64,000 bases of DNA. Source: Lepidodermella squamata (lineage: Eukaryota > Animalia > Gastrotricha). The stretch is from positions 1,860,001 through 1,924,000 of the forward strand of contig JBLDXI010000025.1 of the NCBI GenBank assembly GCA_047495785.1, read 5' to 3'. Both the position numbers and the translations under genes were made by a program. The notes under the pieces are model-generated. The model saw only the letters and a program-made list of their open reading frames with translations. It was not told where the DNA came from and made no database searches. Positions 5,605 through 55,163 of the stretch are shown here, piece by piece; position 1 is the stretch's first letter, and each line of letters opens with the position of its first letter.

Positions 5605-7819
5605 CTATTCTGAGAAAGGTAGTTGAACTGTGAGATTCGCCACCAAGTCGGAGGGTACTTCTTTTAGGTCAGCCATATACGCCACCTGGTCGTTCCAGAT
5701 TTTTGCAACTGCAACAATATCGTTGCGCAGATGCAGCGCGAGAAATCGCCGATAAACCGGTCGTGAATAATGCGGCCGATCGACGCTGAAATTCGGGTTG
5801 TGCTGAGGGCTTATCGCCAGTTTCATGGCGACTATTCCGAGGAAAACATCGTCGAATTTAAGAAATTTTACAAAAGGCGAGGCAATTGCGAATTTTTTGA
5901 CAACAGGTTGTGACATAAGGTAAGCACCGGCGGTTATGAAGGATGGGAATAGCGAAAACGGGTACTCGTCAACGGTCACGTGCCACTTTCTCAATCGATG
6001 GCGCATAGGCCGTGAGCCAGGGTAGTTGTACCCTTCATATAACAGCTTTTCCCTTCCAGGTTCCAAGGCCTAAAAACGAGAAAATGCAATGACGAATCGT
6101 ACAAATTGTTGGGCATACCTTAAGGTAGTCGATGATAGCAAAAACATTGACATAATAATCATCGTCAACAAAGAAGACGTAGCGAGCATTGGAGCAATAT
6201 TCAGCAGTCCACCTAAAAAAAACGTATTACAAAATATATAAATAATCCAACAAAACCAATTAAAAAACTTGAACGGAATCTTAACCTTAAAGTATGGCTT
6301 ACTCTGCACGTGTGCAAAATCTTGGTGATTTACGCAATAAATGTTTATCCACGTGTCAATAGTTGCGATCAAAAAATCGAAAAAAATCGAACAAATAAGA
6401 GAAGTGAGTATTTTCAATACATTTGGATCGCGCGCGATGTTGCCAAAAGGTTAAATTTCTAATGATCAACCTGTCTTCAAACGAGAATAAAATTTAGCCA
6501 ACTATTTATCGAATGAGAAAAAAATAAAGCTGTGGGCCCAATTGCGAACTTCAACTTTTCACGAGCTCACAATTCAGCATTCGCGTAACATTTTCATTCC
6601 GGAAAGCTCGGAATTCTACTTATGAAAGCTGTTTCAGATGAAAAAGAAAAAATAATTGAAAATATTGAGACTAGCGGAATAAAATCGAGTGAAAATGTCC
6701 GCAGTTAGCAGAAAATACTTCATTTCGTGTTGGGTTTTTCAAAGTTTAACATTTATGAAATTATGGAATAATTTGAAAATATTGCTGGTGTCCTTTCATG
6801 CGACAATGCCGTCGATAGCTTTTGGGTTAAGCGGCGCTGGTTTATTTCTATCTCAACATAAAATCGATGGAAATGTTCAGAATTAATGAAATGATGCTCA
6901 ATTTGTTCTGATTTTGATGACATTTTTCAGATTTTTTGTAAGAAGTACGTTCAACCTTAAAAAACTAGATACCCAGAACGCGTGCAAAAAAACGTATCAC
7001 GATTAAAATCCCCGACAAGATCGCGAGTTGAGCAATAGGCATGATACCCACGTGCCGGGTCGCAACGAAAAAACATGAAATAATTGGCCTTAATTTTGAC
7101 AAGGCTAAATTTTTTCATGTTTTTTTGACATGGGTTTTTTAGGTTGAAATATATTTTAGTAATTTTAGTAAATTTTTCTCAAACTGTAAAACATACCTTA
7201 GGCCCATAATGGCCTTATAAGTGTTGTTCCAATAATCGTCCGTGAAATCGTATTGAACAATATCGCCGTAGAGCCGCGACTCATTAGCAACACGTTCTTG
7301 AAAGTCCGGATTATCCGGCATGGCCAATAGAAAGACAGTTCGTAGTTGAACAGAATTGGCGCGGTTAGGAAAAACCTCCGTCAAACGGCCCCACGATTGC
7401 CGGACAAGTTGGCGATTTTGAAAATCCCGCGAAGCCGATTTGACGAGCATCAATAGAAACAGGCCTTTGCCAGCATCTGAGCACAATTTTGAGCTATGAG
7501 CAAGCCGCCAATCGTACGGCGTTATCGGCCGCAAACTCGGCGGCAGTAGCCGATAGGACCCATTCGCCTTCTGAACGAGATCGACCAGTTTTGAATAGTC
7601 AGTATCGACAGGATAGCTGAACTCTGAGAACGGAACTTCGTAGAACATTTGAACTATGCCGAGGTAGTAGTCGGCGAGAATTAGAAAAACCAGCACGCCT
7701 AACACGCGGTACCACGAAAAGTGGCGCCGCGTGGCTCGCAGCGATTTAAACGCCGAATTCACCCACGAAAACATGCCCGGTTGATGGCGTTCGTTGCTTA
7801 CAGGCAGCAAATTCGTCAT
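5605..7819 (-). CDS. brn: GT31 beta-1,3-glycosyltransferase, brainiac/bre-5-like (exons 7819-7197, 6212-6119, 6069-5605)
   Basis: N-terminal TM anchor and motifs LVKSA, R..VRQSWG, YGDIVQYDF.D.Y.NNTYK, FFVDDDYYV (DxD, brainiac-like), FITAGAY and FDDVFLGIVA; splice phases agree. Confidence 0.85.
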
Positions 7820-8862
7820 CGGTTATCGCTGAATTTCGCCCGTCTAGTCGAGCTGGCATTGCCGCTCGAGCGACGCTTTATAACCACCCAGGGTTCAGTA
7901 ATTAAAAATCTAAAATTAAAACAATTAATCAAAAAACATTGAAAATTTTAATTCTCAAAGTTCCAAATTTTTTACCAATGACTAAAACAAAAATCAACAG
8001 TAAAATGCAGGACAAGAAAGAGCAGAAGAAACCATTTTTTCGATATCAATCAATCGTTTTTTCTTTCACGTGCCATTTGAATATTGCGAGGAACATCCGT
8101 GTTATGTTATTAGGTAGAAAATTTCGAAAAATAAATAAAGAGCTCGCGGTTTTCACGTCGGAAATGTTTACACAACTGTTTCTTAACCGCACTTTCGTTA
8201 GAAATTAAAGCTAAAATGCATTGAAGGTCAAAGATCAAGCTCCGCAGCTGTTTTAGGGATGAAACGATTACAAGCACCATGCAAATACCAAAATAACCCC
8301 TGGATTTTCCCTTCTTAAAAAACACATTAACCAATAAAGAACTCGACTTGCATAAATAAAAATTTTCCATCGCTTTTTAAAAGATGAAAAGATGAATATA
8401 GGATGTAACTTGAATAAGAAATTTGTAGCCAAACACAATAATTCCAAGAAATTCCTGAAATTAAAGAGGGTTCAGAAACCCGAATTTTTTCCCAGTCAGA
8501 ACATTAAAAGCGAGGCTTCAGAGTCGCAGAATTTTGCGATTTCGAATTCTTCCTTTCTCAATTCATCATAGTAACACGGGATTTTTCTTATTTCTAGCTA
8601 CTTATCGGTTCAGGATAAGAGAAGTAATATTAAAAAGAAGAACTAAAATCTTGAAAATAGGGAAAATTTACGGTTAAATCCATCAAATAGGTGGGATCAC
8701 TCCCCATCCCTTTTTCCCTCAATAAATAATTTCGGTAAAATAGAAAATGGGCCCAATTGAAGATATTATTTTCCCGATAGAATGGAATTAAATTATTTTC
8801 GTTTCATCCCTAAAGCGCATAATTATTGAAAATTCCTCCTTATCGATAATATCTAAATCAAT

Positions 8863-33258: not shown

Positions 33259-34749
33259 ATGTCCGATAGCTCGGTTCGCAAACAAGCTATCATTCCCGAA
33301 TGGCTGAAATCAGCTCCCATCACTTTTCCCATAGAAAATGCGGAGGAGCGGGTTTTCACGCTTGATAGTCCGGATGACTTTTATCAAATGCTGCTAAAAG
33401 AGATAGGTTTGTTTTCTCTCACTCTGATTCTAGCTTTTATTTGTATTCTCTCCCAGAGCAATCTAATGAACGAATTTACTGGAGCAGTCTATATTTTGGC
33501 AATGGGGCATTGGAGAAGAAGCTTGTTGATAAACTTATTACACGAATGTCCTTGAAAGAAAATGTGTGTTTCAATGGAATTTTCGACTATTGCAGAGGTT
33601 TGAGGGGCCATCCATCATCTACAGTCGGCATGTTTACTCCGCTGATTAACGCTTATCCAGACCGAGCGACCTTGAACCTGTTCAAATCACCCTTCTTCCG
33701 CGGGTTACGTAAATTGATTCCTCAAAAGTACAACGAAATATTTTCAGTTCATCATATGAAGCTATATGTGTTTGACTCGACTGTGATACTGAGCGGTGCG
33801 AATCTGAGCGATAATTACTTCACAAATCGTCAGGATCGATATGTTGTCTTCAAAAACTGCCCTGCTATCGCTCAATTTTGTTGTGATTTGATCCAAGCTC
33901 TCGGCTCGCTTTCATTCACTGTTAAACCTGATGGCACGTTGAGGCCGTCCAATCCAAAGCTCGTTGACCCTGCTGATTCTGAGGCGCTTAGCAATTGTGG
34001 CAGCGAAGTATTGCAATCTTTTATAAAGCGCTGGACAGCCACAGCCAATTCCAAAGTTGGCGATACCTTGGTGTTCCCATTTCTTCAGTCAGCAGCGCTT
34101 GCTATCCGCGATGAAGAGCGCGTTACTGAAGATATGATGAAACATATGAAACCTTCCGACTCTCTATTCATCTCGACCTCATACTTCAACCTTACTGATA
34201 GCTACCAAAGCATATTGCTGGACAACTGTCCTGCTAAATCGATAAAAATATGTGTTTCATCGCCTCGGTCTAATGGCTTTTTCGGCGGAACTGGTCCATC
34301 GCAATTCGTTCCTCACGGCTACATTCATTTTTCTCGCAAATTCTACGAGCAGATGGAAAAATCTAATCAAACAGATCGTATTAAACTGTACGAATACGAA
34401 CGTGATAAGTGGACATTTCATTCAAAGGGAATGTGGCTATTCGAAAATGGCAATGACCTACCGTTTGCTTCCTTTATCGGATCTACCAACTACTCATACA
34501 GGTATTTACTTGATTAAATGAGATCAATTTTATATCAATTTCTACCAATTTAGGAGTGTCAATCGGGATCAAGAAGCGCAATTTGTTATGGTTACCGCGA
34601 ATAAAGAGGTGCAAAAACGATTAAAAAATGAAGTCGACTTGCTAACAAAGAGATGTTTGCCTCTTAATAGAGCAGTCTTCTTGCGACCTGACCATGCTGT
34701 TGCTCGATGGGTGCCATTAGCCGCTAAGATTGCTCGATACTTCTTCTAG
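33259..34749 (+). CDS. PGS1: Phosphatidylglycerophosphate synthase PGS1, PLD superfamily (exons 33259-33406, 33457-34501, 34554-34749)
   Basis: HMKLYVFD..ILSGANLSDNYFTNRQDRY, WTFHSKGMW, IGSTNY.YRS..RD.EAQ and C-terminal FF; introns of 50 and 52 nt. Confidence 0.93.
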
Positions 34750-37800: not shown

Positions 37801-39568
37801 TCTGGATACATCTTTGTCTTGTGAATCTTCAAGCCGCGCTCAGTGGGGCAATCCTTACCGCATACGTCGCATACGATAAGCAAAGACAGTAAATGCCGTA
37901 AGATTGAGAAAAGCATGGTAGCGAGTTAAGTAGCAATTACGAGCTATTAAGCTGGATTATGGTTCTTGAGCCGCTTTATAGCTCGTTTAACACGCGTTTC
38001 ATTGACATCTCCCGCTTTTTCGGTATGAAATTATCACGATTTCAATAATCCTTGAAATAATCACGATTTCCAGTGATATTTACGAAAAATCATTGTCCAG
38101 ATTGACACTGTATGAAATAGTCACGATTTAATGTAAGAATGTATGAAATTATCACTGTTTGAAATACCCTGTATGAAGTAACACCGATTCCTTCTATGAT
38201 CAATTTAAAAAGTAATTTTTCAAGGGGTCCAAATATTTGAACCACTAAAAATGAGGTTCCAGCACTAATTGAGTCGTTTGTTGATCGATACTGATACCCT
38301 CCCTGAACCTAAGATTTTTTATTTTAGCTGCATGGTGCTCTAAGCTACGTTGGAAAAGTATCAAGACGGCTGATATCGGGAAATCACTGATTTGTAAAAT
38401 CGATCCTTGGAATCGATATCGGCTCAAAAAGATGAAGTATCATTCGTGAACTGACCGCTCATAGCGCGAAGGTACGCATGATATGAAGGTCTATCGGTTA
38501 GGCATAATAACACAAAAATTGAGGTTCTAGTGAAGACTAGAAACTCGAAAACCCATATTCAGGGGAAATCTAGTGCTGGAACCCTAAATTCCTATATCGC
38601 AACATCAATTCATCTTTCAAATTATAGTTGGTAGGTTTTGCTATTTCTTCTTGATTTTGAAAAATTTCAAATCGACAAAATTATTGTTAATAAATTTTTT
38701 TGTATGATTTCAGAAGCTGGCTAATAAAATCAAGGACCTACAAGGCGAAGAGCTTTCCCTCGAAGATCTCGACAGCAAAGACTCAGCGTATTGCCTAGTC
38801 GACAAATTGCAGCGAAAATTCATGCAAACCATGAAAACGCTCGCGAGAAAACACGGCCACAAAGAAGTTCTACTCGGCCGGCCGACGGACAAAGTACTCA
38901 AATACGACCTGTGCCAGCACGCGGAGGTGAATGATGAAATCAACCGATTGCTACGAAAACGCTCCTTCCCAGACATGGCCGACATTGTCGAGTGCGTGAA
39001 ACGCGCCGATGAAGCGCACGACTTGAAGCTGGACCGGTTTTCGATCGAACTAATTGCGAAAACAGCATTCACACGCATTGGTGAGCATATCAAGAAATTG
39101 CGCCGGCGCGATTTCATTCAAAATTTCGGCTCGCCCTACACGGATCAGGCGCATATCGGCAACGACCCGGCGCATTTAGACCCGGAGCTGAGCGAAAAAT
39201 TGAAGCGGCAAAAGGAGTTGGGCGATCAACGACTCCAGGAGGTTATCGATCGTTACGCGGTGCGGCAGGACGAAATACCCGAGGCTGAGCTTCAGGCTGA
39301 ACAGGAGCAAAATGATGACGACGAAATTGACGAGGAAATGAGTGAGGACGAGGACGAGGACGAAGGGGTTGATGATGATGGAAGCAATGATCTTGAAAGT
39401 CCGATTTCGGTTGAATTCGCCGAGGAAGCTCCGCCCATCCCTCGAAATGCGCCTATTGATCTGGTCGAAGAGCCGACGCCTGTCCCGGCCACGTCTGAGC
39501 TCAGTGATGACGATGTACCTCTTGTTATTTCTGAAAGCGAGACTTTGATCATACCTGAACTGCAATAA
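34826..39568 (+). CDS. DAXX: DAXX H3.3 histone chaperone (exons 34826-35701, 38714-39568)
   Basis: Histone-binding domain ELSLEDLDSKDSAY, FPDMADI, AF..IG....RR.DFIQNFG, DPA..DPEL..KL, RLQEVI..YA..Q; acidic tract; SIM-like VPLVISESE tail; phase-0 intron. Confidence 0.9.
36016..36384. mobile_element. Tc2/pogo-like MITE remnant in the DAXX intron
   Basis: TA|CCGTAAAT ... ATTTACGG|TA termini with TA flanks and internal repeated gggct(t/a)cta motifs. Confidence 0.55.
36472..36960 (-). mobile_element. 5'-truncated, internally deleted CR1/L2-like LINE 3' end
   Basis: RT C-terminal fragment (EKCAVLYLG..N...YKDLGLLVDQKLNFKAHI...KAYQR..LL.R) joined directly to the WNRLP terminal motif, then AATAAA and an (ATT)n tail at 36472-36500. 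Confidence 0.8.
36961..37730 (-). mobile_element. Mutator (MULE) transposase pseudogene fragment
   Basis: FVDGTFK.VP..FYQL, Y.L.TNKSQELY, DYELG, GCHFHYCQAV, FFDYIDSYW motifs; frameshifts and stops downstream. Confidence 0.85.
38025..38185. repeat. Degenerate tandem repeat with core tgaaat.atcacgattt
   Basis: About 6 imperfect copies visible. Confidence 0.6.
38255..38585. mobile_element. Dispersed MITE-like repeat family; other copies at ~53130-53305, ~56120-56180 (inverted) and ~61625-61790
   Basis: Shared core ggaaa..cactgattt..(gtaaaat)cgatacttggaatcgat(at)cggct, and gaaatctagtgctgga in two copies; inverted tccagcacta/tagtgctgga near the ends of this copy. Confidence 0.7.
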
Positions 39569-40564
39569 ATTTTCCTTAGAAATTGACAAGTGAAAAGTGG
39601 GATTTGGCGATTTTTCATATCGCGACAGCTGAAATACTATAGAATAGGTATTCTTAGCTTTTAGAATGCCCTAATCCGATTTTAAATTTTGAATTTAAAA
39701 TTTCTAGCGATGCATCCACCTTAAGATGATGTTTCAATGTGGGTACTCCTGAATTAATTTTCAAGTGAGACTCCTGATTTCAGAATCGAACGAGTGTGTG
39801 AAAATAGCAATAAATTATAGGTTAAAGCAAATTATTATCTAGTGCAAAAAATAAACAAAATTTACTAGCCCGAACATTTCCAAATATTTTATTTAAATTT
39901 TTTCGCCCAATTTCTAAGCTATTATTAACATCGCTTCTTGATCTTTGAATTGGATTTCAAGGTGTTGAAATTATCGCCCAAACCCCACTTTTTACTTGTC
40001 AACGGTCAATTGAAAATCTGACGACAAAATTTTATATCGGTGAAGAAATCTTGCCATCCTTTGCTACGTAGACCGTGAACAATATGATGAGCATTTTCAA
40101 CAATCTTTCGTCACATTATCGCTCAAATATTATTTTATAACCCGGTATATATAATTATATGTAATTGAAACCGTTGAATATATTATAGGTATAATAACTA
40201 CTTGATGAGATATAAAAAGATCGAAAAATGTGTAAAAATTTCTTGATTTCCATTTTTTCGCTTTAACACCTTGTTGACGTCTCTCGACGCGAGTTAAACT
40301 GCTGATTTTTTAGTAACAATCCACTTCTCACGTCCGTGTTTTCGTTTCTGTTTGATGTTGACAAAAAACTCACTCGATTTGAAAATAAAATTTGACGGAA
40401 CCTCATTATAATTCTAATTATGTTTTTTCAATTTTTATTACAGGTCGAGAGAAAATAATGAGTCGATTGTTGAGCTCGATGAAAAAATGATGAAAAATTG
40501 AAAAAGCTCAAAAATAGGTTTATCAGGTGAAAAAGATAATGAGAAATTGTAAAATATCGTGAAT

Positions 40565-40881
40565 TCAGGCCCTTCGAAGCATTTGTTGCGAGTATCGGCA
40601 GTAGAGATGCCAGGCGTGCTGCCGCATGCAATTGTTGTAGCTGCTGTTCTTTTCGGCCTCTTTTCGCAGATTCGAGGCCATTCGACGCATAGCAGCCGTA
40701 TCCTGGCGTAGAAATACGCTTGAGAGGACTTCTGATAAAATTCGGAAAAAATCGATTATTCCCTGTTTCAACTCGAAAGGTAACCTGGTGTAATCCTGTT
40801 GTCAGCCGCGAAAACGCTATTTGAATAGCCCATGAAAACGAATGCCAGCAGAATTGTTAAAACGTAAATGTAGTGATTCAT
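40565..40881 (-). CDS. Unrecognised small secreted peptide precursor A, 87 aa, one Cys pair (exons 40881-40785, 40731-40565)
   Basis: Signal peptide MNHYIYVLTILLAFVFMGYSNSVFA and a 53-nt phase-1 intron, then EVLSSVFLRQDTAAMRRMASNLRKEAEKNSSYNNCMRQHAWHLYCRYSQQMLRRA; paralogous to 50736-51941. Confidence 0.8.
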
Positions 40882-41729
40882 TTTTTTAACTGTTTAAAAA
40901 TGGGAAAGTAAACAATAAATAAGGTAGCCACGTTATTTAAAGGCTAAACATCCTCCTACTACCACACGTGCGTTTCGCTCATAGTCACACAGTTTTGGCA
41001 GATTTCCATGAAATTTTAACAAAAAAATGCGCACTAGTTACGACCTCACAACAACACGGCCTTTGCTGATATCTTCATTTTCGGTTAATTACGACGTGAA
41101 TTTGTCAGGCAAGCTCCCACTGTTCGCGGTTATTTGCCCTGATTTCCATGCTCATTAATTTCAAACTTTATGCGTGATTGACGATAATTGCGAGAAATCT
41201 TGGGGCAATCTTAAATTATCTTGAGGCATTTTTCGAGAAGAACTCGGTGCAAAAATTGCCTGGCGTTGTTGATGAGTATAGGGAGTAGGGTGACTGACTG
41301 CATGTAATATACAGGTGCGCAAATATTATTACTTGAAATTATAGCCGCTGTTTGCGCATCGACGCAATAAAGTTAAGGAGGGGCGGACGGGAGAGGCGCG
41401 CGCGCCCGGTTTCGTGTATCTCGCCCTACTCGCACACAGGGAGGATGAGCGCACTTGACTCGGCACGCGCGCATAGTGTTTGCGCCATCCACTCGAACGG
41501 CGCCTATGCTACCGTGTTGATTTACCGATTTAACGCGCCCGTCTCGTCACCCTTCGGTATACACAGAAGTAAGAAGAAGTAAGGAATACCCGGCCGGGCG
41601 GGCAGGCGGGCGATGACGACAACAACAGGCGTGAAGAGTGATAGGTAATATAAGTAGTAAGTGGTAATAATAGGCGCTAAAAACTTGTTATTTGTTTGAT
41701 CAGATGACAAGTGCGGCGCGTGGCCAGCG

Positions 41730-41768
41730 TATAAAAACCCGGCCGCAACTCGGTTTCGACAAGCAGTT
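41730..41768 (+). promoter_or_regulatory. TATA box plus Inr-like element with no downstream ORF
   Basis: TATAAAAA at 41730-41737 within a GC-rich island; GCAGTT about 30-35 nt downstream. Confidence 0.45.
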
Positions 41769-43672
41769 CCGCCTTCTCCTCCTATTCACTCCTAGCCATT
41801 TCTCGACTATTCATTCGACTTCTGGCGAGTTGGGGCGGGCGCATGCATCTCTGAGCTACCGTTCTAGGGGAGCTCGGGTTTCCTGAGACACCGAACAGTC
41901 TTATAGCAGCTATCTGCGCACCCTGTTCGTTGTCCAGTTTAACTCGAACTTCTCAATGGTTAGCGAATTCGCCGAATTAATCACCTCTCCTTATATTTTC
42001 CTTATAACTAAAAATTTTGTTTCAGGCCAATAGTTAGATATTTCAGCGGCTAATATTTTACAGCTTTAGTTTAGCGCTTAGTTTTCGCTCACAACTCTAT
42101 AATTGTTCACATAGCATTCCATTCGCAATCGGTTATATAAAATCCGCGATTATTCAGGCAAATTCCAAAATCAATTAGCAAAGGTGTGAGCAATACTACA
42201 TAGCGTGTCCCAGAAGTTGCGCAATTACTTTTTACATTGGAAAATTTTCGTAGAAAATTAAAATAATTTTTCAAAATTAAACCTACCGAGAGAATATTCC
42301 ATTTTTTCTCTATGATTTTTACCCCCGGAAAACCCCGGTGGTAACTGGTTCGGTGATATTCGTTATTTTATCCGGTTGGACCAAATTTCTCCGGACTTCT
42401 TTAATCCCCCAGTAACAAGTTAGATACTTGGTTACTATTTTAGTGATTTTTTGAATTTTTCAAAAAATGTTCATGGCCATCGTTTCTCATTCTAGAGTTC
42501 TGAACCCTTTTCCGTCCATTTTATTTGCTTGCGTTTCCTATAGCAGAAGCTCTAATAACTACGCTAGAAAAGAGGGGCTGCTCAGGCACGTTAGGGCCAT
42601 ATTTTAATTTTACGCTAAAAGCGTTCGCAGAAAAACTATACAGGAACGTGGGTCATTTTATGCGTTGTATGAATTAAAAATTTCCACAACAGAAAAAACG
42701 GCTCTTGAATTAGCGTAACCAATATTCCTAGAATATTCAGCACACCCAAAACTGGTCTTATTCTCGGGTATCACAGAATTAATTATTTAAAATCCGAATA
42801 ATTTACGATAAAATTCTGCGTAATTTTCAGTGTATGCCGTGTCATCACTGCGAGAAATTTGCAAGAATAATTTTTTACCCGGTGTTTTTTACCTTTGGTG
42901 AAAATTTGTGACAATTCGATTTCACGTAAATATAATGTGGTAAGAAAATCATAGAATTGGCAAAAATACTTCGATTTTACGAGGATTAGCATAAGAATCG
43001 AATCTTATAGGATAGGTATAGTATAAAAACAGCTTGAAAATAGCGAGAAACTTGAGTGTTTTATTATAAAGATAAATTGAGTAAATTGAGGAGTTCCGTT
43101 TTTTAGCACCTAGGGCCGCTGAAGTTTGTCATTGCTGACGTCTGTGAAATGGACAATTTTTCAGTTTTATTGTCTTTCACGCCGGTTGAGTTACCTTGTC
43201 CCAGAGAGAAAGCTATTTCTAGCTCAGGATCAAAAAAGCTGCCCTTGTTTAGCCGAATAATGTCGCGGATTGACAAAATCATCCTTCGTATCGTGACAAT
43301 TAGTTATCTGTATAACGTGCGCAAAGAAACCAATAATTAATGGTACAAAATTCAGCAAAAACGCACATTTTGACATTAATCGAATCAGGCTAAACAGCCT
43401 AGTTATTCCCTCGACAACAATAGGTCGTTTTTTGTACTAATGATCGTTACAGCTTTGTTTTTTATTCATGTTTTCACAACAGTACCGGTCAGTTTATTTG
43501 CACTCATCGATGAAAATCGCGTGTATAATAGCTGTCATTTTCCACCGTGAGCTTCAAATTAAAGTTATAAATTAACATAAAATTCTTGTAATATAATATT
43601 TTGTATAGTTAAATTCTGAGAAAAATCATTCAGCGGTGAGCGAGTTCGTTAAAAGCGTCACGTGACCTTCAA

Positions 43673-46600
43673 TTACACGTAATTAGCCTGCTGAAGGGCT
43701 TGCGAGTTGACAGTCGCCCGGCCACCGGACACAGCACTGCTGCCCGCCTTATTGCGCCGCGACAATCCAGCAGTGTCAACATAGCGCGGGTTTACCACGC
43801 TCGGGTTATCGGGCATGCGCGGGCGTGCCGACCGGCTGCGATGCCGCGGGTTTAGCAGCGTCGAGCCGTTGCCTCCGAGTAAGGACGTGCCCGACCCGGG
43901 TGCGGCGTGGCGTTCAGCGCGGCGTCTTCGGCAGCACGCGTTCAGGCCAAAATCGATATCGGCAGCGGCGACCAAGTGGAAGAACGTGTCGAGACGATGC
44001 GTTAACATACCAGCGTATTGGATGAACAGAATTACAGCGAAGAAGAACAGGAAAACCATACCTAAGGGCAAAGAAATTGAATGCTGGAACTCTAATCAAA
44101 ATTGGACTTACCCAAGGGTTCGAAGTATTCGAGCCGACTCGAGTCGTCACCACGTGGGATGGGCACGAAAATCGCGTATTTCAGCAAGTCTTGATGGTAC
44201 TGCAGTTGGAAAGTGATGACAATCCACAAGAAGTTCATCATCGAAACGCCGAACACAACGTTGTCACGTAGCACCTTCAACTCAGCCGCAATCTTCTCCT
44301 TCTTCTGCTTATCATCCGGCAACGGGTAGGCATAGCGGCGGATCAGTTGGTTCCAGAAGTCGACTTCATCCTGCTCGAGGTGACGAATCGGACCCTTACC
44401 GACAATGTCGTTTTTCAGCCAGAACTCTTGGTCGACTTGAATAGGCTCAGCTGGCTTGGGCGCGGCTGGCTTCGGCGGTTCGGGGACAGGCTCGACAACA
44501 ACAGTTGGAACCTCGGCTTGCTCAGTTGGGACAGGCCGCGGGATATTAGCAGCCTCGCTTTCAATATCGGTGAACCTCACAGTTCGACTTGGCTCGATGC
44601 CAACACGCTCTTTCGCCATTACGGTCAGCAGATCGCGAATGTCCTTGAGTAGCGGCAGGGTGTCTGCAGCGTTTTGCAGATTTCCAGCTGAAGATACGGT
44701 ATCGCGATGAGCTAGACCCTTCAGGAAGTCTTTCATATCACTGACGATTTGAGTGACACCGATTCTTTGAAGGAAGTTGCCACCAGCTGCTGCTGTAGCC
44801 TTCTTCTTCGCCTTATCAGCCTCCGCCTTGTCCTTTTCCTCCTCCTGTTGCTGCTGGAGTTGGACCGGCGTTTCGCGGGTACCCCATGATACGTTGTTCA
44901 AATTTGCCAGCGAATAAATCGTGAGCAAGAGGTAGCCGGCTGGGATGCAGAGAACGTAGAGCCAACCGTGGATGAGATCGGTGAACTCTTTCGGGTGACA
45001 TCCGGCCGATGATATGAAGATGGCGAAGAGCGACATGACGAAGATTACGTTCGGTGATGTGATGGATTCTTGCAGGCCGTTGATGATTGTACCGACTATT
45101 ACGACAAGCATAATCACAGCGTAGATTGCACTCAGAACCGCAGCAGTCTAAAAGAAATTCGATATTAGTATTCGTTTGGTTAAACAAGTGTCTTTAGTCT
45201 AATGAAGCATCTCTCCAGTTATATTGGCAATCTGGCAAACTCAGGTTTGTCGAATCACAATTCTAAGCTTTGCACCTCGCCATAATTTGCAGAGAATTAG
45301 AGTTTTTGAGCTTGCAGTTTTTAAATTGATAATGCCAAACAATGAAAACCGTACGTGAAGTCAAGTTTCTCAGTAGCTCTGGTATGTCTATGAGCTGAAC
45401 CTTTTTGAATGTTGACCAATTGAAAGTGGTACCAGAATCTAATTATTTTACCAGACCCCAATGTTCAATTGTTATCGATCAACCATTACCTAATCCCTAA
45501 GGTCTAGTCGAAATATTCCCTTTTTGTAACAAAAGATTAGGTCTCACTAGGGGCATTTTTGACATCAAACTCGAGGTAAAATGGTTGGATATGTTGCGGA
45601 GCTTAACTTACATTAATTTGTGTGTCAGTTTTGCATGTCATGCAAACTGCCAGGAAGAACGCAGGCGGAGCCATTGAAATAATGTACGACTGAATGAGAT
45701 CAAGGTGGAACACAGCGTTGTACGCGCCAGCAATCATCATAATAATCGTAGCCGGGCCAAGCAGGGTCGAAATGAGCAAAATGAACTGATACGCAACGTA
45801 GGGCAGCGAGAAGTTGTCGTTCATGATGACAGTCTGGCGCCAAGACGACAAAAGATCGACGATGTTGGACAGGGTCGACGGGCCCCAACGACGGCGTTGT
45901 TGGTAGAACTCGTTGAAAGATTCCGGGCAGTGGGTCAAGGCATCGGCGGCAGCTGAGTATTCAGCTCGGTAGCCTTGTTGTAGCAACAGGGTGCAAAGCC
46001 AACGATCCTCGCCCTGATCGTACTGGACGTAGTGGGCAGCTTCCGTACTGGTCGTAGCGTAGGCGCGCATGACGTTATCGTCCATCAGAGCCGAACCGCG
46101 GAAGAGGGAGAAGCAACCGGGTGTACAGAGTACGCAGCCGAAAACGTGCTCAGCAGCCTTTTGCAGCCAATGGGCAATAGCGTACTCGAACTTCTGGTAC
46201 CACACCATCGGACCACGGCCAATCGGGTGAATGCGACCACAAGCAGCTCCGACCTTCTTACTCTTCTTCATCAAATCAAGCAGCAGCAGGACAGATGAAG
46301 CTCGGAAGTCGACATCTCCGTCTAGAGTTAGCAGGAAGGTGTTTTCGGCGGCTTGAGCCGTGTTCTCGCCGACGTGACGGAAAACTTCGGGGTAGTCAAG
46401 TTTGTCCAGTTTCAGCTTGATCTTCTCGTCTTCACCCATCGATTTCGCGCGTTGCTGCTCGCCAAGTTGCCAACGGCGGCGGTACAACGGGTCTTGGCAA
46501 TACAGTTTGTAGCCCAATAGGTAGTACATGTACATGACCTATACAACAGGTAATCAGAAAATTCAGAGTGAAAATGTGATTCACAGACCTGAGACCAGCG

Positions 46601-49600
46601 TTTCTTGTGGCGCATTCGATTCTTGTCCTTGAGGTGAACCACGAGAAGAGTGCCACCAGGAAGCATCCAGATCAGGCGACCACCGTAAGGAGTCGGAATT
46701 CGAGCCGGGTCAGGAAGTTCGAAAAATCGGTTGTAGACAGCAGTTCCAGCATCACGCAGTACATCAACCATAGTTCGGACGAATTCGTTAGGTTGAACGC
46801 CCTAAATTCACAGAAATAAAGAAGAGCTATCAAGATTAAGGGAAAGCTACCTGGCAATCAGCAGTCATTTCCATTGAATCGTCGAAAATAATGTGAGTCT
46901 CATACTCGTAGTAGTTGATCTGCGAAAGAATCTCACTGGCCGCTCCTAAGGTCTCAGGATCGCTTGACGCGTGCAGGGTCTCCAGAACCCTCTTCCTCTC
47001 CGCATGATCCTTGTCCATCCTGAAAATCGACTTCATCAACTCCGTCATCTCATCGCGTGTTTCGTGCCACATGGTCGCACAGGCGTAGATTCGGGGTACG
47101 ATTGGTGGAGAATCATTCGCGCCATTATGGTTCTTCTTACGCCCACTTGGCGAGTCATTACCCGACAGCAGCAATGTATCATTGATTCGTCGATTGAACA
47201 TAAGCCACTGTTCCATGAATGGCGAGCAAAGACCTGGTAATACGAAGATTTTCTCGACCTCGGCAAGACGTTCGCAGTTCAGGAACCAAACGTGGAAAGC
47301 TGCTAGATTCTGCGCGAAGTACCAAAGAATCAACACAGTTGGATAGATCCATAACGCATCGTCATTCTCCCGCGGTAGACAGTACCACTTATTGCCAGGC
47401 ATGTCGAAAACCGTTGCCAGCCAATGAAGCATCCTGCCAACGATTGGAAAGTTCGGATCAACAGGTTGGCAACGAATCAGCATGATCGCAACTGTCAACG
47501 GCGTCGCGAGAGCTAACGGAAGAGCGAACGCGAGTTGTTGCATGAGCAGCTTGCAGGCCAAGGCTGAGGCGAGGAATGCGATGAAAGTCGACGTGATGTG
47601 GGCGATGAACATCGAGGTGACGTTGAGAAGACCGGCGTCGGCTAGATCTTGAATCGAGTAGTTGCCGAACAGAAGTTCAGTCTCGTTCTTTGTGTGTTCC
47701 GCCATAATCTCGGCGGTCAAGTTGATCTTGAAGTTTTCGTATGGGTCGTTAGTCAAACTAGAGCCGGTAAAATTCGAGGTGAGAAAGCTGTGCAGAGGCG
47801 ACATGAACGGCATTTCCCAAACTGGGGTGTTTGAAAATGCGAAATCGGCGAAGAGACAGGCGACGAGACGAGATCCGCATAGAATCACGGTAAGCTTATC
47901 TTTCACACGGTACAAATCACCCATGATCGCAGGCCAGTTCGGAATTCGAATAGAACCTAAGAATAAAGCTTATAAGTCTACCTGATCAAAATCCTTAAAA
48001 GCTTACCGAATTGTAAAGGTTCCGAGAAAATCAAGTTCAGGGTCCATACGAACGATACCAGGAACAGACTGACTGGCAGCTCCCAGGTTCGAATCTCCTT
48101 CCAGCCACTCGAAGTGCCCAAAATGATGAATGGAATGATGCTGAGCACCAAAGCCGTGAAGTAGGCCAACTTGTTCAGAAACTTTCGCTGCATCACGCCA
48201 ATCATACAGCTGTATGCGTCTGATACGAAAATCAGCCCGCAGATGCTTGGTATGGACGAAACGGCCATTGCGAATGAAGTCAGCTTCCAAATGTTGGTGC
48301 CGGGTATGATGACGCGGTTGATGAAGAGAACCACGCCGAAGCTGTGGGCGCATTCTAGACCGACTAGGAAGGCGATGACGTAGAACGCGGGCAGGGCTTG
48401 CGAACCGGCGAAACCCACTCGGACGATGCCGAATAGGAACCATAGTGCGGTCGGTGCTAGGACGGCGGCGAGAGATAGGAAGTGGCAGTATTCAGTGTAT
48501 TCGTACCGGCCACCTTCGTGAACTTTGAAAAATTCTTCAACAATGGGAGGCTGAAATTAGAGTAGGATTAAGGCCGAATTCCGCTTTTAAAATCCCCTGA
48601 TACTGAATTCTATGACTTAATTTTACTTCACCGCTCCGTTTTTTATTAGTCCTATAATTCGTATAATTCGTATATTCATATTCCTTTTTCCTATTCCTAT
48701 TCCTATTCCTATTCCTATTCCTATTCCTATTCCTATTCCTATATTCCTATTCCTATTCCTTTATTCCTATATTCCTATTCTTATTCCTATTTGTATTCCC
48801 TACCCTAAACCTTACTTTAAACAGCAATCTTTATTATTTTTTCCTTTTTCCTATTCCTATCTGTGATCCCATTTAGAGTTTAATTAAGATAATTTGATTA
48901 TTTTAATTCGAGGAAACCTTAATACTTGATAATTAATTTTATATAAGTTTTACGGAATTAAAGATCCTGTTCAATTCACGCCATCCTATAAGTATTTGAA
49001 TTTCGATATTCTAGACATTGCCATTCTTAAATTCCCTTTTTGTCCCATTCCTATTCTTCAAGTATGGTAACAAAAAGTCTGCATACCTCGATTTGAATGA
49101 TATCTTTCCAAGAACCAGCCAGGGTCAAAAATGTAAGTCGACTGGTAACAACAGACCCGAGAACAGTGACGAAAAGCGCGATGTAAATCGTGAACCGGCA
49201 AACTTGAACCCAGGTCGCGAACTGCGGCTTATCCTCCTGGTCCAACATTTGCTCGCGTTGCACCTTTCGAAACACATCCCACGGGTATTTCGGCTTGCTG
49301 AACGGGCTCGATTCCGGCTCTTCATTTTCACATTCAGCCGCCGGCGCTGGTTTCTTCTCAGCATTCTGCTCGACGTTGGCTGTAGGCGGTGGCGGGGCTG
49401 TTTTTTTCAGGGCAGACCGCTTTGGAACCCCAGACTGCGACCCAGGTGGTTGCTGATGGTCGTTCTCATCGCCACTTTCGTGCTCGATTACGCTGATTTT
49501 AACCTCTTCGGGAGCTTCATCTGACCCGGTTTTTTCGCTGCCCTTGCGAGGGGTGCTGGACGCGGGTGCGGATGACTGACCCGGGCGTAGTGAGCTTGAC

Positions 49601-50144
49601 CCGGTTGTAGGCTTCAAGGTCGATTTAGCGGCGGCTGCTTTGTTTGAGTCGAAGACAAATTCGTCCTCGGATTCTGGATCGTTTGGGGCGTTTTGGCGAC
49701 TTTGAGGTCGTAAACTCGACCTGCCCATGGAACCTACCTAATAAAAGCAAAAATTATTTTAAATTCAATCTTAAAATTAAATTCAATTGAAAAAATAGGT
49801 AAAAATGGGGATAATTTTTTCGGAGAAATTTGAAAAAATTTGAAAAAGATTGTCCTCAACATTTCGGGTAAATTTCCAATTCTATTTATCAGAATTTTTT
49901 TCGGGCAAAAAGACAATAAAACAATCCAATTAATGGGGTTATAGAAATGATCCTAATGATAATTAAGGGTGACTTGGAACTTGGAGCCAAGGAATCCAAC
50001 TTGGAACCTTGGAACCTAAACCAGAATGAACCTGTCTTGTTCATTTCCAACAAAACAATAAAATTGGAACTTGCTACATAATTCCAATATTTTTTAGAAA
50101 ATATGGGAGAAATTAGGACAAGCAATTACCTTGTTAAGCTCCAT
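43673..50144 (-). CDS. CHS: Chitin synthase (GT2) (exons 50144-50130, 49737-49087, 48550-48007, 47956-46851, 46801-46589, 46538-45612, 45147-44112, 44061-43673)
   Basis: CATMWHET, TPYGGRL, KKRWSQ, LDGDVDF, QKFEYAIAHW, QGEDRWL, QRRRW and WGTRE motifs; no myosin-motor domain seen. The 15-nt first exon (MELNK) is tentative. Confidence 0.95.
48690..48800. repeat. (CCTATT)n microsatellite in a chitin synthase intron
   Basis: Directly visible hexamer array. Confidence 0.9.
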
Positions 50145-50735
50145 TGTGAACAAGGCCGATAAAATGTAGTAAAATTATTGCGGTAAAACTTCGATCCGGC
50201 GCGTCGTTGTTGAGTTAAAAATTACTGGTAAAAATAAATAGAGGGAAGTCGTTGATGCTATAGGGGTTGAACGTTAATTTTTAAATTTTCTATTTTTCAA
50301 AATTTTGCGCCAAATATTTTTCGAGAACAGCGGCGCGTGCTGCGTCGTACGCGTGCCGAGTCACGCTCGAGCGCACCCATTGCGTAATAAGTACTACATT
50401 TGATGTTTTTGCGCTCATTCATGAAAATTCCCGAACAAAATTCAACAGGAATTCTAAACTAATTCAGTTTTATTTTCATTAAACGTAAATTTGCACCAAC
50501 GTAGAAATGATCAATTTGAGCAATCATAAACCAAACCGTACTGTTCACTTGAAAAAACAGAATTGAAAAAAACTAAAATATCGACAGTTTTCAAAGATTT
50601 CCAACAACTTCACATACCAGCCTGCATTTCTGTTAATAATCATCAAAAATGTGGAATCAAATCGTAAAATCACAATTTTCAACAATTTTAACAAGCTAAA
50701 AATCATTCAAGGGTATAAGTTCGCGATAGAGCGTT

Positions 50736-51941
50736 TTATGTGTTTCCGCTTGATTCAGCCTTAGATCCACCAATCTTAGCCGCTAGGTTCCGGGCCCACA
50801 TGTAGAAGGCGCCTCGTTGTAGGCAGATGTTGTAGGAATTGCCGAAAACTTTCATGCACTGTTCGAATCGGCGAACTTTTTCCTCTTCGAGTTCTTGCTG
50901 TCGAATTCGAACTGCCAATTGCCGCATTTTCGAGACGTCATTTTGCAAGAAAGACCGAGCTATTCCCTCTAAAGAAACAGGAAATTTATTACAAAAAAAT
51001 TATTTTCTGCAAAATATTTTCATCACAACAAGCTTTTTCGTGATTTAATCCTATAAATATCTGATTTTTTTAAATTTAAATTAATTGTCGCAATTGATAT
51101 TTTAAACGATTTTGGATGACCCGAACTAAATTTTTATGCCGTCTCACGCTGACAAGTCCGAATTTAGATAACTTGAGATCTAATAAAAATGGGTCTTGCT
51201 TATTTAGCGGAACCAATTTTCAACAGTTTATTCACCAAAAACGCATTTCCTGAATTTTCTAAAATTTCACGATTAATTAAAAAATCCGGGACTACTCCAA
51301 AACAGCCAAGAAAAAACGAAAGAGACCAAAACAGCCAAAAAAATCCGATTGTTCTCGTTGCGCAACAATCGAAAAGTTTGGCTGTTATGGTATCATTTAT
51401 TTTAGTGTCATTTGTTTTGGAGTAGTCCCAAAAATCCAAATAAATTACGTTGAAATTCTCCGCAATTTTTTTTACGAGGCCTGGTCCTAAATTTCAGAAC
51501 GCGACGCGGTCATGATCAACATATTCATTCGAAAATGGCCTTTTTCATAAGTTTGCCATTATTTAGTTCCGCTACAGTCAATTTTGTTCCGCGAAAAATA
51601 AGCTGATAACAAAGATCCTGAAATTTTCAAAATTCAACACAGATAGGAGACCTTCAGTTGGAGACAGAAATCTTTGAAAAAAATATAAAATATTAGTAGA
51701 AAATCAGATTTTTTCAAACTTTAGAACAAATTGAATTTTTCTTTTGAAAATTGAGGAATTTTTTCACCTAATTCGACGTGAAGGTTAAGAACTTACCAGG
51801 TATCTGTCTTCTCCACTTGGCAGATTCAGGCTCAACGTCTCGCCTAAATCTACTCTGGATCGGCAATGCTTCAATCGTAATCGAAAATGCTGCAGCAATA
51901 AGCGTGAAGCATATAAAACTGCTGAAAATGTAGTTCTTCAT
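50736..51941 (-). CDS. Unrecognised secreted peptide precursor B, 125 aa, dibasic/furin-type sites and one Cys pair (exons 51941-51797, 50968-50736)
   Basis: Signal peptide MKNYIFSSFICFTLIAAAFSITIEA, RFRR and KWRR sites, phase-1 intron, then EGIARSFLQNDVSKMRQLAVRIRQQELEEEKVRRFEQCMKVFGNSYNICLQ... Confidence 0.85.
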
Positions 51942-53320
51942 CGTAAATTAATATAAGTTTTTTCTAAAAAGCATAATAAAAAAGCTGTAAAAATATTCCT
52001 TCATCGTAAAATGAATGTATAACTGCGCTCTTCTGCAAAGCGTAAATTGTCTAGATAACAGGTCGAATTTTTTACTTATTTATTTCGGGTAACCAAAATT
52101 ATTATTGCGTCATGCTTAGCTGAGTTCTGGTACATTACTGCGGGTAACCTTTGATCTGGCCGGTGAATCATACGAGGGCGTAGAAACAGCAACAGACCAC
52201 GAGTGCAAGCCGCACGCACTTATACGACCACAATTTTTTGCACCCTATGAACTACCTGTTATTCGCCGACTATTACGATTATCATCACATATATACTGCT
52301 GAACGTGTCCGCATATTATTATTATGATTAATGGACAGCGGTGTGTGCGTTGTTTATTTCTTTGTGTTTTTGACTGATTCGCATTGCTTCACTCGTTACT
52401 TCGCGCTAACCAAAAAATTGCGTCGCAGTGCGTACGTTTTTTCTCGCTCTCTGTCAAAGTGCGCGCGCTAATTGCGCCTCGCATTTTGCTCTATTTTTAT
52501 GTATTTTTTTGCGCGTGCGTGTGCACGTGAGCGCGAGACTAACACGCGCGAGTAAATTTATAACTGCTATATATAGTTGTTTATTCCACTTTTCGAGCTC
52601 ACCTCGACTGGTAGGGTGCGTGGTGCGCGTTTATGGCCTGACTGTAACGCGTGGGCTGAATTATTTTCGTTCGAAAAATTTTGGCTCACCGGGTTAATTT
52701 CGGACAACGTTGTTTTTCGAACCAGCTTCAGTTTCGGACACGCATATGGTTGACTGAAATTCAGGCGAGTGAATTTAAAGCGAATAATGTAAACACCTAA
52801 ATCTCAAAAAGCGGAAAAATTCCCAGCTAACCCGAACATTTTAGCTAATTAAAGGAAGCTATAACCCAATGTAGGCAATAATTAATTGAGACATTGTCAG
52901 AAATTACCTCGTATTTGCGTGATTTTGAAGCTAATCGAATTTGTAATAAAATTACATTTTGGGGACGTTCAAGCCATTCGTACATTGCTTTGCGCGATTT
53001 TTCTCAAACATCCTTGACGATTCGGTTTTTTTCATTTGTCGACGTTCCTGAACCTACGAATTTTTTATTTAATCTACATGGTGCCCTAAGCTATGTAGAA
53101 AGATTTTAAAAAAATGTTGGTTCCAAAACGGTTGATATTGGAAAAACCACTGATTTCGATACTTGGAATCGTTATCGGCTTTTCAGGCTGAAGTGAAACT
53201 CGTAGCGCAAAATGCGGGGAATATGGAGATCATAAGATTGAGATTCTAGTGAGACGCGAAACTTGGTAAAACCTTTATTCGATGAGAAATCTAGTGCTGG
53301 ATTCCCCAATTTCGCGCTGG

Positions 53321-53400
53321 AACCTTATTGAAGCCTTATTGAACCCTATTGAACCCTATTGAACCTTATTGAAGCCTTATTGAACCCTATTGAACCTTAT
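53321..53400. repeat. Tandem 10-11-mer repeat (CCYTATTGAA)
   Basis: About 7-8 consecutive units adjoining a dispersed-repeat copy. Confidence 0.85.
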
Positions 53401-55163
53401 CGTAGCTTCGAATTTCGAATTTAATCAGTTGATAGTCATCTCGAAATTCAATCATTCAATGCATTCAATCACCCTCCAGGGTCGCGGATCCAAAACAGAT
53501 TTGAAATTGCGATACATTTCGACTAATTCGAAATTAATTTGTTGACACTCTGATATCATCTTAAAACACCGAAAGTTTGTCACTTGTCACTGAAGTATTC
53601 GTTTCTTTCCAATGCTCTGCTTGTCATTCGCCGAATCGGCGGGCTGAAAAGTCCTTTGTCGACATTGCCGGTTGTCGGTAATAATTATTATCTATCATGC
53701 TATATTAATTGGGTGGTTTACGAACCGCGAAACAAACTCCCCAGTTCATCAATCCGAAAAGCTCAATTTTAATCAATCACATGATTTTAAAAAATGTCGA
53801 GTAGAAAAACTTGGGAATAGTCTTGCTCTAAGCAATTTGGACGTGTCTGATATGTCTAGAGTCTAGAGCAACGGAATGGAGGCGGTGGGTGGCGTTAATT
53901 TCGACTTCAACTCGCTGATTTTGTAACGCTTCCGCAAAAGCCGATAGGTTTCCGTTTCACTCCGCCGCGCATTTTCTATATACAAAAAAATAGCGGTAAA
54001 AAAAATAATTCAGATTGAAATGAAACACCAACTTTTCGGCTGCTGGATCTGCGGCGAATTTATTCCCGAAGATTCGTTGAGTCGCTTCAGCACGGCCGCG
54101 TCAACGTTAGCGTTTGGAAAAGCTCGAAAATTGCAGAAATAAAAATCGGCCTTGAAGAGTGTTTGATCGTTCGTGATAACAAGGCGGGGTATCGCGTTCG
54201 ATGGGAATGTCAAATTAACAGCCAGGAACATAGCCCAAAGCAGTTTCACGAAGGAAGCATTGAAATCGTAAAACTCAAGTTCAACAAATTGAGAAGATTT
54301 TCTCATGTTAAATCTAAAAAACGGGATAAAATCAACGTTGAAAGAATTTTGTTGAAAATAAAACGGTTTTGACTCGCAAGGCGACAGGAGTCACGATTTG
54401 CACGCAGGTAAAAATCACGAGACTTTGTGACCTTCTTACCTACATGGAAGTTTGATCGTTAATTTCATGTACCGTACTGCCCGGATTTAAAGCCATGCCA
54501 TTCATTTTTTAGCACTCGACCCAGCGACTATTAGCGTTAAAACTGTCAATAAAATGTTCAAAAAGGAGGTCACTGAAAATTATTTTTGCGAAAATTTTAT
54601 AAAAATCCTTAGTTTTTTCAATAATATAAAACCCGATAAAATGAAAATTTATTTAAAAATTTCTCCTGATAAAAACATATTTAAAAAAATCGGTCATTTC
54701 CAGAGAGAGCTTGAAAACGAGGTTATCCGAATTTATTTGAGCATAAAAAGTCGATTTTATCGGGGTGAATTGGTCGACCTAAGCCTGATACTGGAAAATC
54801 CGAAGATAGTTCCGAAGTTCTCCAAACCAATTTCAAACGCGATCAATTGTGTTTGAAAATTTATTCAACTGCATGATTTTAGGTGTTTTATAGGGCCTTT
54901 TGGGAAAAACCCGACTATTTTTGTCAAATTATCGATACGTAAAAAATATAGGGAAAGATAACATCAGGTGCCTTGGGTGAAATGCCAATGACAGCTCTGT
55001 TGTTGCTGTCTGTTAATGCCACAATGTATTTTAATTTCTATTTCGGGGTTAAATTTTCGGATATAAAAAGTAATTAGTCCGATCGAAATAATGAGTTGAC
55101 CCCGCATTGAGGGAAAATTTGAACTAAATAAAGGACAGTGCGGCTAAAAATATTGGGCTTTCT

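Follow-up and report, generated by a model that had tools for sequence, protein, structure and literature searches.

The window analysed here is a stretch of 64,000 nucleotides (nt) from the gastrotrich Lepidodermella squamata (contig JBLDXI010000025.1, positions 1,860,001 to 1,924,000 of the forward strand), and our subject is a pair of small genes in it, referred to as A and B, which flank a chitin synthase gene. A preliminary description of this DNA had proposed that the two genes encode paralogous secreted peptides of an unrecognised family. We compared the genes with each other and with public protein, structure and sequencing-run data, and weighed what their products could do.

Gene organisation of A and B

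Both genes lie on the minus strand, and all the sequence features that had been listed for them are present. They are laid out as follows, in window coordinates.

40881-40565, minus strand: gene A, a small gene of two exons with a phase-1 intron
40785-40881, minus strand: exon 1 of gene A, ATG at 40881, 32 residues, signal-like N-terminus, last base the G of a Glu codon
40732-40784, minus strand: intron of gene A, 53 nt, from GT at 40784 to AG at 40732
40565-40731, minus strand: exon 2 of gene A, 54 residues and TGA, predicted helical domain with two Cys nine residues apart
40434-40439, minus strand: putative polyadenylation signal AATAAA downstream of gene A
40933-40941, minus strand: putative TATA-like box of gene A, TTTAAATAA, about 55 nt upstream of the ATG
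51941-50736, minus strand: gene B, a small gene of two exons with a phase-1 intron
51797-51941, minus strand: exon 1 of gene B, ATG at 51941, 48 residues, last base (51797) the G of a Glu codon
50969-51796, minus strand: intron of gene B, 828 nt, GTAAGT..TTTAG
50736-50968, minus strand: exon 2 of gene B, 76 residues and TAA, with Cys37 and Cys48 at a predicted turn and a GAFYMW motif
50469-50474, minus strand: AATAAA of gene B, 3' untranslated region (UTR) of about 260 nt

The phase-1 introns split the same codon in the two genes, that of the Glu following a Pro, and both have GT..AG borders, as had been reported. Exon 1 of gene B encodes, in order, a hydrophobic N-terminus, RFRR, an acidic stretch, KWRR, Q-I-P and the first base of the Glu codon, so that the acidic pro-piece (DVEPESA) sits between two furin-type sites. 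The RFRR and KWRR sites, with Gln after them, are thus present as described, and cleavage at them is predicted. Gene A was rightly said to lack a propeptide, with no convertase site ahead of its domain; its product stops ten residues past the second Cys and is without the GxFYxW tail that is common to the rest of the family described below. An AG acceptor-like site is located no more than 25 nt upstream of the ATG in both genes, which would fit trans-splicing.

The intron of gene B contains a high-copy element at about 51125-51522, where contigs of the DNA run have a depth of 924-2919 compared to about 77 beside it. The element has many loose ends and small deletions and includes an internal inverted repeat (51288-51429, a 72% match to its reverse complement); judged from these features, it looks like a repeat of the MITE (miniature inverted-repeat transposable element) type.

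Paralogy of A and B

The proposed pairing hinges on a significant alignment between the two genes, and one was found: their exon-2 products align in BLASTP with an E-value of 1e-6 and 30% identity. In a six-frame translation of the whole window, A and B are reciprocal best tblastn matches (5e-4 and 1e-3), the next match being at 0.6 or worse. The exon-1 products give no BLASTP alignment, and the claim that the starts of the two genes are homologous is therefore statistically unsupported, although the letters on which it was based had been read correctly. Neither tblastn nor a profile scan of 2,077 stop-to-stop open reading frames (ORFs) found further copies in the window.

Pairwise BLAST and MAFFT alignments placed the first Cys of A on the second Cys of B. 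This register was rejected, since both Cys align once five members from outside the window (see below) are added; the CM-x8/9-C register of the preliminary description is thereby restored, with both Cys invariant across seven sequences. From the exon-2 alignment, the reciprocal matches and the recovery of both genes by a profile built from outside members, it is very probable that A and B are real paralogues, members of a family without a name whose small secreted products form a helical hairpin with a single Cys pair as its staple.

Relatives outside the window

As the claim of an unrecognised family rests on the absence of known relatives, an exhaustive profile search was made, in which an alignment of the two exon-2 products was compared with 1.84 billion representative proteins. 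Three proteins were found at E < 1e-3, of which two (P0003 and P0002, both unnamed) are clear kin and place the family in at least two further organisms. The third, P0001, is 1663 residues long with six short matching stretches and is assumed to be a low-complexity match. Word-based protein searches with each exon-2 product singly found no relative, and a word-based search with a four-sequence alignment returned P0003 again and nothing further. Two scans of Joint Genome Institute (JGI) metagenomes, with B-type and L001-type patterns, gave pattern matches but no relative confirmed by tblastn.

P0003 is a 65-residue fragment encoded on L001 and on L002, a pair of metagenome contigs with 98.9% identity. 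Its source gene on L001 consists of two exons, the first with a signal-like product and the second corresponding to P0003. The intron of this gene is in phase 1 and located as in A and B, with the split codon, then four residues and five residues, ahead of the conserved Asp. L001 carries four tandem paralogues within about 5 kb. Two of these share intron position and phase with A and B, one of them having a GC-AG intron, whilst the other two are single-exon genes with signal-like N-termini of their own; one of the four has KR after the signal peptide. The array is flanked by long inverted repeats with near-identical ORFs (15-326 on the minus strand and 7706-7996 on the plus strand; 545-877 on the plus strand and 7321-7581 on the minus strand), an arrangement in which it may lie inside or between copies of a mobile element.

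P0002 (L003 117-872) is encoded on a 976-nt contig from a sequencing run of unknown type. In the public gene call two TGA codons have been translated as Trp, which lengthens the protein by 74 spurious residues N-terminally and 9 C-terminally; under the standard code the ORF is L003:339-845, which encodes 168 residues with a signal-like start and a B-like end. Around the two Cys and the subsequent G-x-F-Y-x-W, B and P0002 are nearly identical over a long stretch.

Conservation within the family

The seven-sequence alignment consists of A, B and the five non-window members, and the two Cys are its only invariant columns. Conservation of motifs is seen in the first helix (D..KMR..A..LR) and, in all members except A, past the second Cys (GxFYxW). 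Overall identity between species is about 30%, identity between paralogues is low and the number of Cys per member varies from 2 to 4.

A hidden Markov model (HMM) built from the five outside members and scored against the 2,077 window ORFs ranked exon 2 of B first (E 5e-16) and exon 2 of A second (E 7.6e-4), with the next ORF at 0.23. As neither window gene contributed to the model, this is an independent test that both belong to the family. Between L001 and L002 there are 4 differences in 1200 nt of family coding sequence and 57 in 4301 nt of non-coding sequence, and three of the four coding differences are synonymous, with codons read by eye. Since differences are four times rarer in coding sequence and mostly silent there, the family appears from these small numbers to be under purifying selection in the L001/L002 organism.

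Predicted secretion, processing and fold

The N-termini of all seven members have a hydrophobic core (11-residue hydropathy of 2.6-3.3) and small residues at positions -3 and -1. In gene A, the core has a mean Kyte-Doolittle hydropathy of 2.99 over 11 residues, with a -3/-1 site after residue 25. The signal peptides ascribed to A and B are thus predicted by this heuristic as well. AlphaFold2 modelled exon 2 of B alone with a predicted local distance difference test (pLDDT) score of 61; with the family alignment, the mean pLDDT was 72 and the model consists of a helix (residues 11-40), a four-residue turn and a second helix (45-70), so that the turn is bracketed by Cys37 and Cys48. A disulfide between the two Cys is likely from this model. 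The net charge of the exon-2 products is +7 (A) and +6 (B), and that of the mature parts about +5 to +6.

Taken together, these features suggest the following path. The N-terminal signal peptide would bring the product of A or B into the endoplasmic reticulum, where the form made from gene A, of about 62 residues, would begin directly after the signal peptide with no propeptide. In the case of gene B, a furin or prohormone-convertase-type protease would cut after RFRR and KWRR, and the cut would release a domain of about 80 residues starting with Gln. The domain would then fold into an antiparallel pair of helices with a short connecting turn, stapled by the invariant Cys that flank it, and the mature proteins could act outside the cell as diffusible ligands, either small protein hormones or pheromone-like signals. 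Secretion, cleavage and the disulfide are each predicted, and the signalling role is the most conjectural of these steps.

Comparison with known families

None of the seven members matches Pfam at E-values up to 1. A PDB sequence-profile search gave no meaningful match, and hormone chains, those of insulin and CRF included, were absent from it up to an E-value of 10; Foldseek against PDB found nothing meaningful. VIA-align against 48,161 chains gave a best Z of 4.7, to a generic helix-loop-helix; the ESM Atlas, searched by features and shape, and Rfam, searched with window positions 38000-54000, gave no match. The family is therefore unrecognised in Pfam, PDB, fold libraries and among named proteins, in agreement with the preliminary description, and the structure prediction that it had suggested yields a helical hairpin for which the fold libraries searched gave no meaningful match.

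Among known systems, A and B resemble prohormone-type precursors such as eclosion hormone and ion transport peptide/CHH in being small two-exon genes with a signal-like N-terminus and a helical domain with a predicted disulfide. B also has furin-type R-x-R-R and K-x-R-R before the predicted mature part; the candidate convertase sites in the family are RFRR and KWRR in B and KR in one L001 member, and A has none before the domain. In contrast to the single predicted disulfide of A and B, eclosion hormone and ion transport peptide/CHH have three, and there is no sequence or fold match to them. A hairpin of antiparallel helices linked by Cys close to the turn also occurs in twin CX9C CHCH proteins and plant alpha-hairpinins (the alpha-hairpinin Jug r 2 leader peptide reached a VIA-align Z of 3.6). 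Those proteins carry a pair of CX9C or of CX3C motifs and form two disulfides, and a signal peptide is absent from the CHCH group, whereas A and B have a single Cys pair, nine residues apart in A and ten in B, and signal-like N-termini.

The likeness to named hormones is the basis for a different reading, in which A and B are strongly diverged members of an MCH-like, CRF/DH44/egg-laying hormone (ELH)-like or insulin-B-chain-like family. Like MCH, A and B have a Cys-Met...Cys loop of comparable size, which in B encloses Gly and Tyr, and Cys spaced 9-10 residues apart around a loop would suit such a descent. The loop of A and B, however, is internal, forming the turn of a hairpin of 60-80 residues rather than a C-terminal 19-residue peptide released at a dibasic site: 10 residues (A) or 28 residues (B) follow it and no dibasic site directly precedes it. 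We also take it that the family's conserved F at +4 and the GxFYxW after the loop are not MCH residues. With CRF, DH44 and ELH the family shares an extended amphipathic helix at the N-terminus in which Arg, Leu and Gln are frequent, but its domain contains two Cys, and it has a second helix and lacks a Gly-dibasic amidation signal, with A ending in RRA and B in GNT and neither having G-K/R. The preliminary description had called the resemblance to CRF/ELH and MCH superficial, and we concur.

The insulin/IGF B chain has a Cys pair 10-11 residues apart in a helix, and the C-x3-G-x-F-Y past the second Cys is presumably reminiscent of it too. Insulin and relaxin differ in their A chain and six-Cys pattern, of which A and B have neither: both contain two Cys in exon 2 and none elsewhere in the mature part, and the family maximum is four. 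There is no Pfam Insulin match at E up to 1 and no PDB insulin chain at E up to 10. Given that no member matches Pfam, that no hormone chain appears in the PDB profile search and that the A-chain Cys pattern, amidation signal and dibasic site before the loop are all missing, descent from a named family has little chance of being the right explanation.

Transcription of the locus

Mapping of whole-sample RNA contigs covered about 6 kb, including gene B and the joints of chitin synthase. The run used, X1, bears an RNA label that is itself a guess, but it behaves as RNA, because its contigs show four CT..AC joints in chitin synthase and loose ends that carry a template-switch cDNA adapter. One X1 contig covers 50530-50931, corresponding to exon 2 of gene B and its 3' UTR, and an adapter loose end is located at 50473, next to the AATAAA of gene B. 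Cover ends at 50969, which is the predicted acceptor if one ambiguous base is allowed, and the intron has no X1 cover except in the high-copy repeat. Exon 2 of gene B is transcribed.

RNA had been proposed as a check of the 51797/50968 junction of B. Exon-2 cover that stops at the acceptor was obtained, but a clean junction was not seen, as the contig that joins 50969 to exon-1 sequence (about 51839-51921) has the two pieces on opposite strands. The break of this anomalous 50969|51921 joint lies exactly at the predicted acceptor. Our guess is that it arose as an artefact of the adapter-tagged library, through a hairpin in the cDNA or through concatenation; it may alternatively reflect an inversion in another strain or trans-splicing.

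The anomalous joint could also be taken to mean that one or both genes are non-working, A being a decaying copy or the ORFs having arisen by chance, and A is indeed the most divergent member and is without GxFYxW, the RNA evidence obtained being for B. This is very improbable, and the least probable of the readings considered here: both genes retain an ATG, a signal-like N-terminus, the family intron site, an open exon 2, both Cys and an AATAAA, exon 2 of B is transcribed, and chance ORFs would not be expected to be the top two of the outside-only HMM.

Linkage to chitin synthase

The gene between A and B is identified as a chitin synthase by Pfam Chitin_synth_2 (E 4e-29).

43673-50261, minus strand: chitin synthase gene, ATG at 49728, stop at 43673
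about 50261, minus strand: 5' end of chitin synthase, marked by a template-switch oligo loose end in RNA contigs
50127-50261, minus strand: non-coding first exon of chitin synthase, from RNA contigs
about 49735-50126, minus strand: intron in the 5' UTR of chitin synthase, 392 nt, from an RNA-contig joint

As had been noted, A and B are co-oriented with chitin synthase, one on each side, with all three on the minus strand. The AATAAA of gene B (50474) is only about 200 nt upstream of the 5' end of chitin synthase, and gene A lies 2.8 kb beyond its stop. B and chitin synthase appear to be separate transcription units, since B has its own AATAAA and chitin synthase its own capped 5' end. No DNA similarity was found between the flanks of A and those of B, and a block duplication around the chitin synthase gene was rejected on this ground.

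This arrangement invites the idea that A and B encode secreted matrix or regulatory factors for chitin deposition (eggshell, pharynx or cuticle) that are co-regulated with the adjoining chitin synthase. The flanking positions, the shared orientation and the short distance from B to the chitin synthase 5' end would fit; nevertheless, we regard the idea as improbable. The four relatives on L001 have no chitin synthase within 8 kb, the transcript ends of B and chitin synthase are separate, A is remote from the chitin synthase stop, the dissimilar flanks leave no recent block duplication, and no chitin-binding domain was found in the family with Pfam. The preliminary description had left the linkage as either functional or accidental; because the L001 array has no chitin synthase, it is most likely accidental, and the separate transcripts further disfavour a functional link.

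Between the chitin synthase stop and gene A lies a G+C-rich island (41330-41900; 0.46-0.50 compared to about 0.33 around it) with GC-dinucleotide runs, in which no convincing ORF and no Rfam match were found.

Possible functions of the family

To our knowledge, hardly anything has been learnt about the peptide and protein signals used in the small and poorly sampled animal phyla. Among the papers searched, none catalogues gastrotrich peptide precursors with the A/B family among them, and none had anything useful on gastrotrich peptides or chitin synthase. The reading to which we give the most weight, with a probability of roughly 0.45, is that A and B are anciently duplicated genes of an unnamed family whose products are secreted as stapled hairpins and act as diffusible ligands. 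A hormone-like role is plausible from the sequences, because B has candidate convertase sites, one L001 member has KR after its signal peptide, the mature size is suitable and aromatic and hydrophobic motifs are conserved across organisms. More tentatively, A and B could be the founding members of an undescribed family of protein hormones or waterborne pheromones, present in gastrotrichs and other microscopic invertebrates, built on a one-disulfide hairpin and having a receptor of its own.

Several observations weigh against the ligand reading. RNA support is confined to gene B, gene A being predicted from its sequence, and in B the one contig that bridges the two exons does so in opposite orientation. 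No amidation signal is found in A or B, and a mature size of 60-80 residues is large for a neuropeptide. Confidence in the structure model is moderate, with the disulfide deduced from where the Cys fall in the secondary structure. The family diverges fast, with 2 to 4 Cys, tandem arrays and a C-terminal motif that is lost in A, and a positive charge combined with fast divergence is also typical of immune effectors.

The last of these points leads to a serious but less probable rival, in which the products are secreted for defence. They would be cationic helical peptides, antimicrobial or directed against predators, that derive from precursors (in B one with a short acidic pro-piece), and their target would be microbial membranes rather than a receptor. 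The charge of the exon-2 products and their predicted helices, the L001 tandem array of four divergent paralogues, the variable Cys number and C-termini with low identity between paralogues, and the very sparse occurrence of the family in databases would all be consistent with defence, as would the acidic pro-piece between the furin-type sites. Yet D..KMR..A..LR, GxFYxW and the Cys pair are kept across organisms, a degree of conservation uncommon in simple membrane-active helices; the changes between L001 and L002, small in number, point to a purifying rather than diversifying pattern; and no named antimicrobial family was matched in Pfam or PDB.

On either the ligand or the defence reading, the A/B family is a concrete candidate for a secreted molecule, restricted to a lineage, that serves in signalling or defence because, unlike most orphan small ORFs, it has relatives elsewhere, a conserved intron, motifs and signs of purifying selection. 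The seven-sequence alignment can serve as a profile for finding further members in transcriptomes. The family also illustrates why such genes are missed: they are spread over two exons and encode 90-170 residues, and public sets show a fragment or a call made with the wrong genetic code.

Other features of the window

An ORF of 358 residues at 33441-34517 on the plus strand, an unrelated neighbour of the genes described above, carries a phospholipase-D-type HxK motif and is presumably a phosphatidylglycerophosphate synthase.

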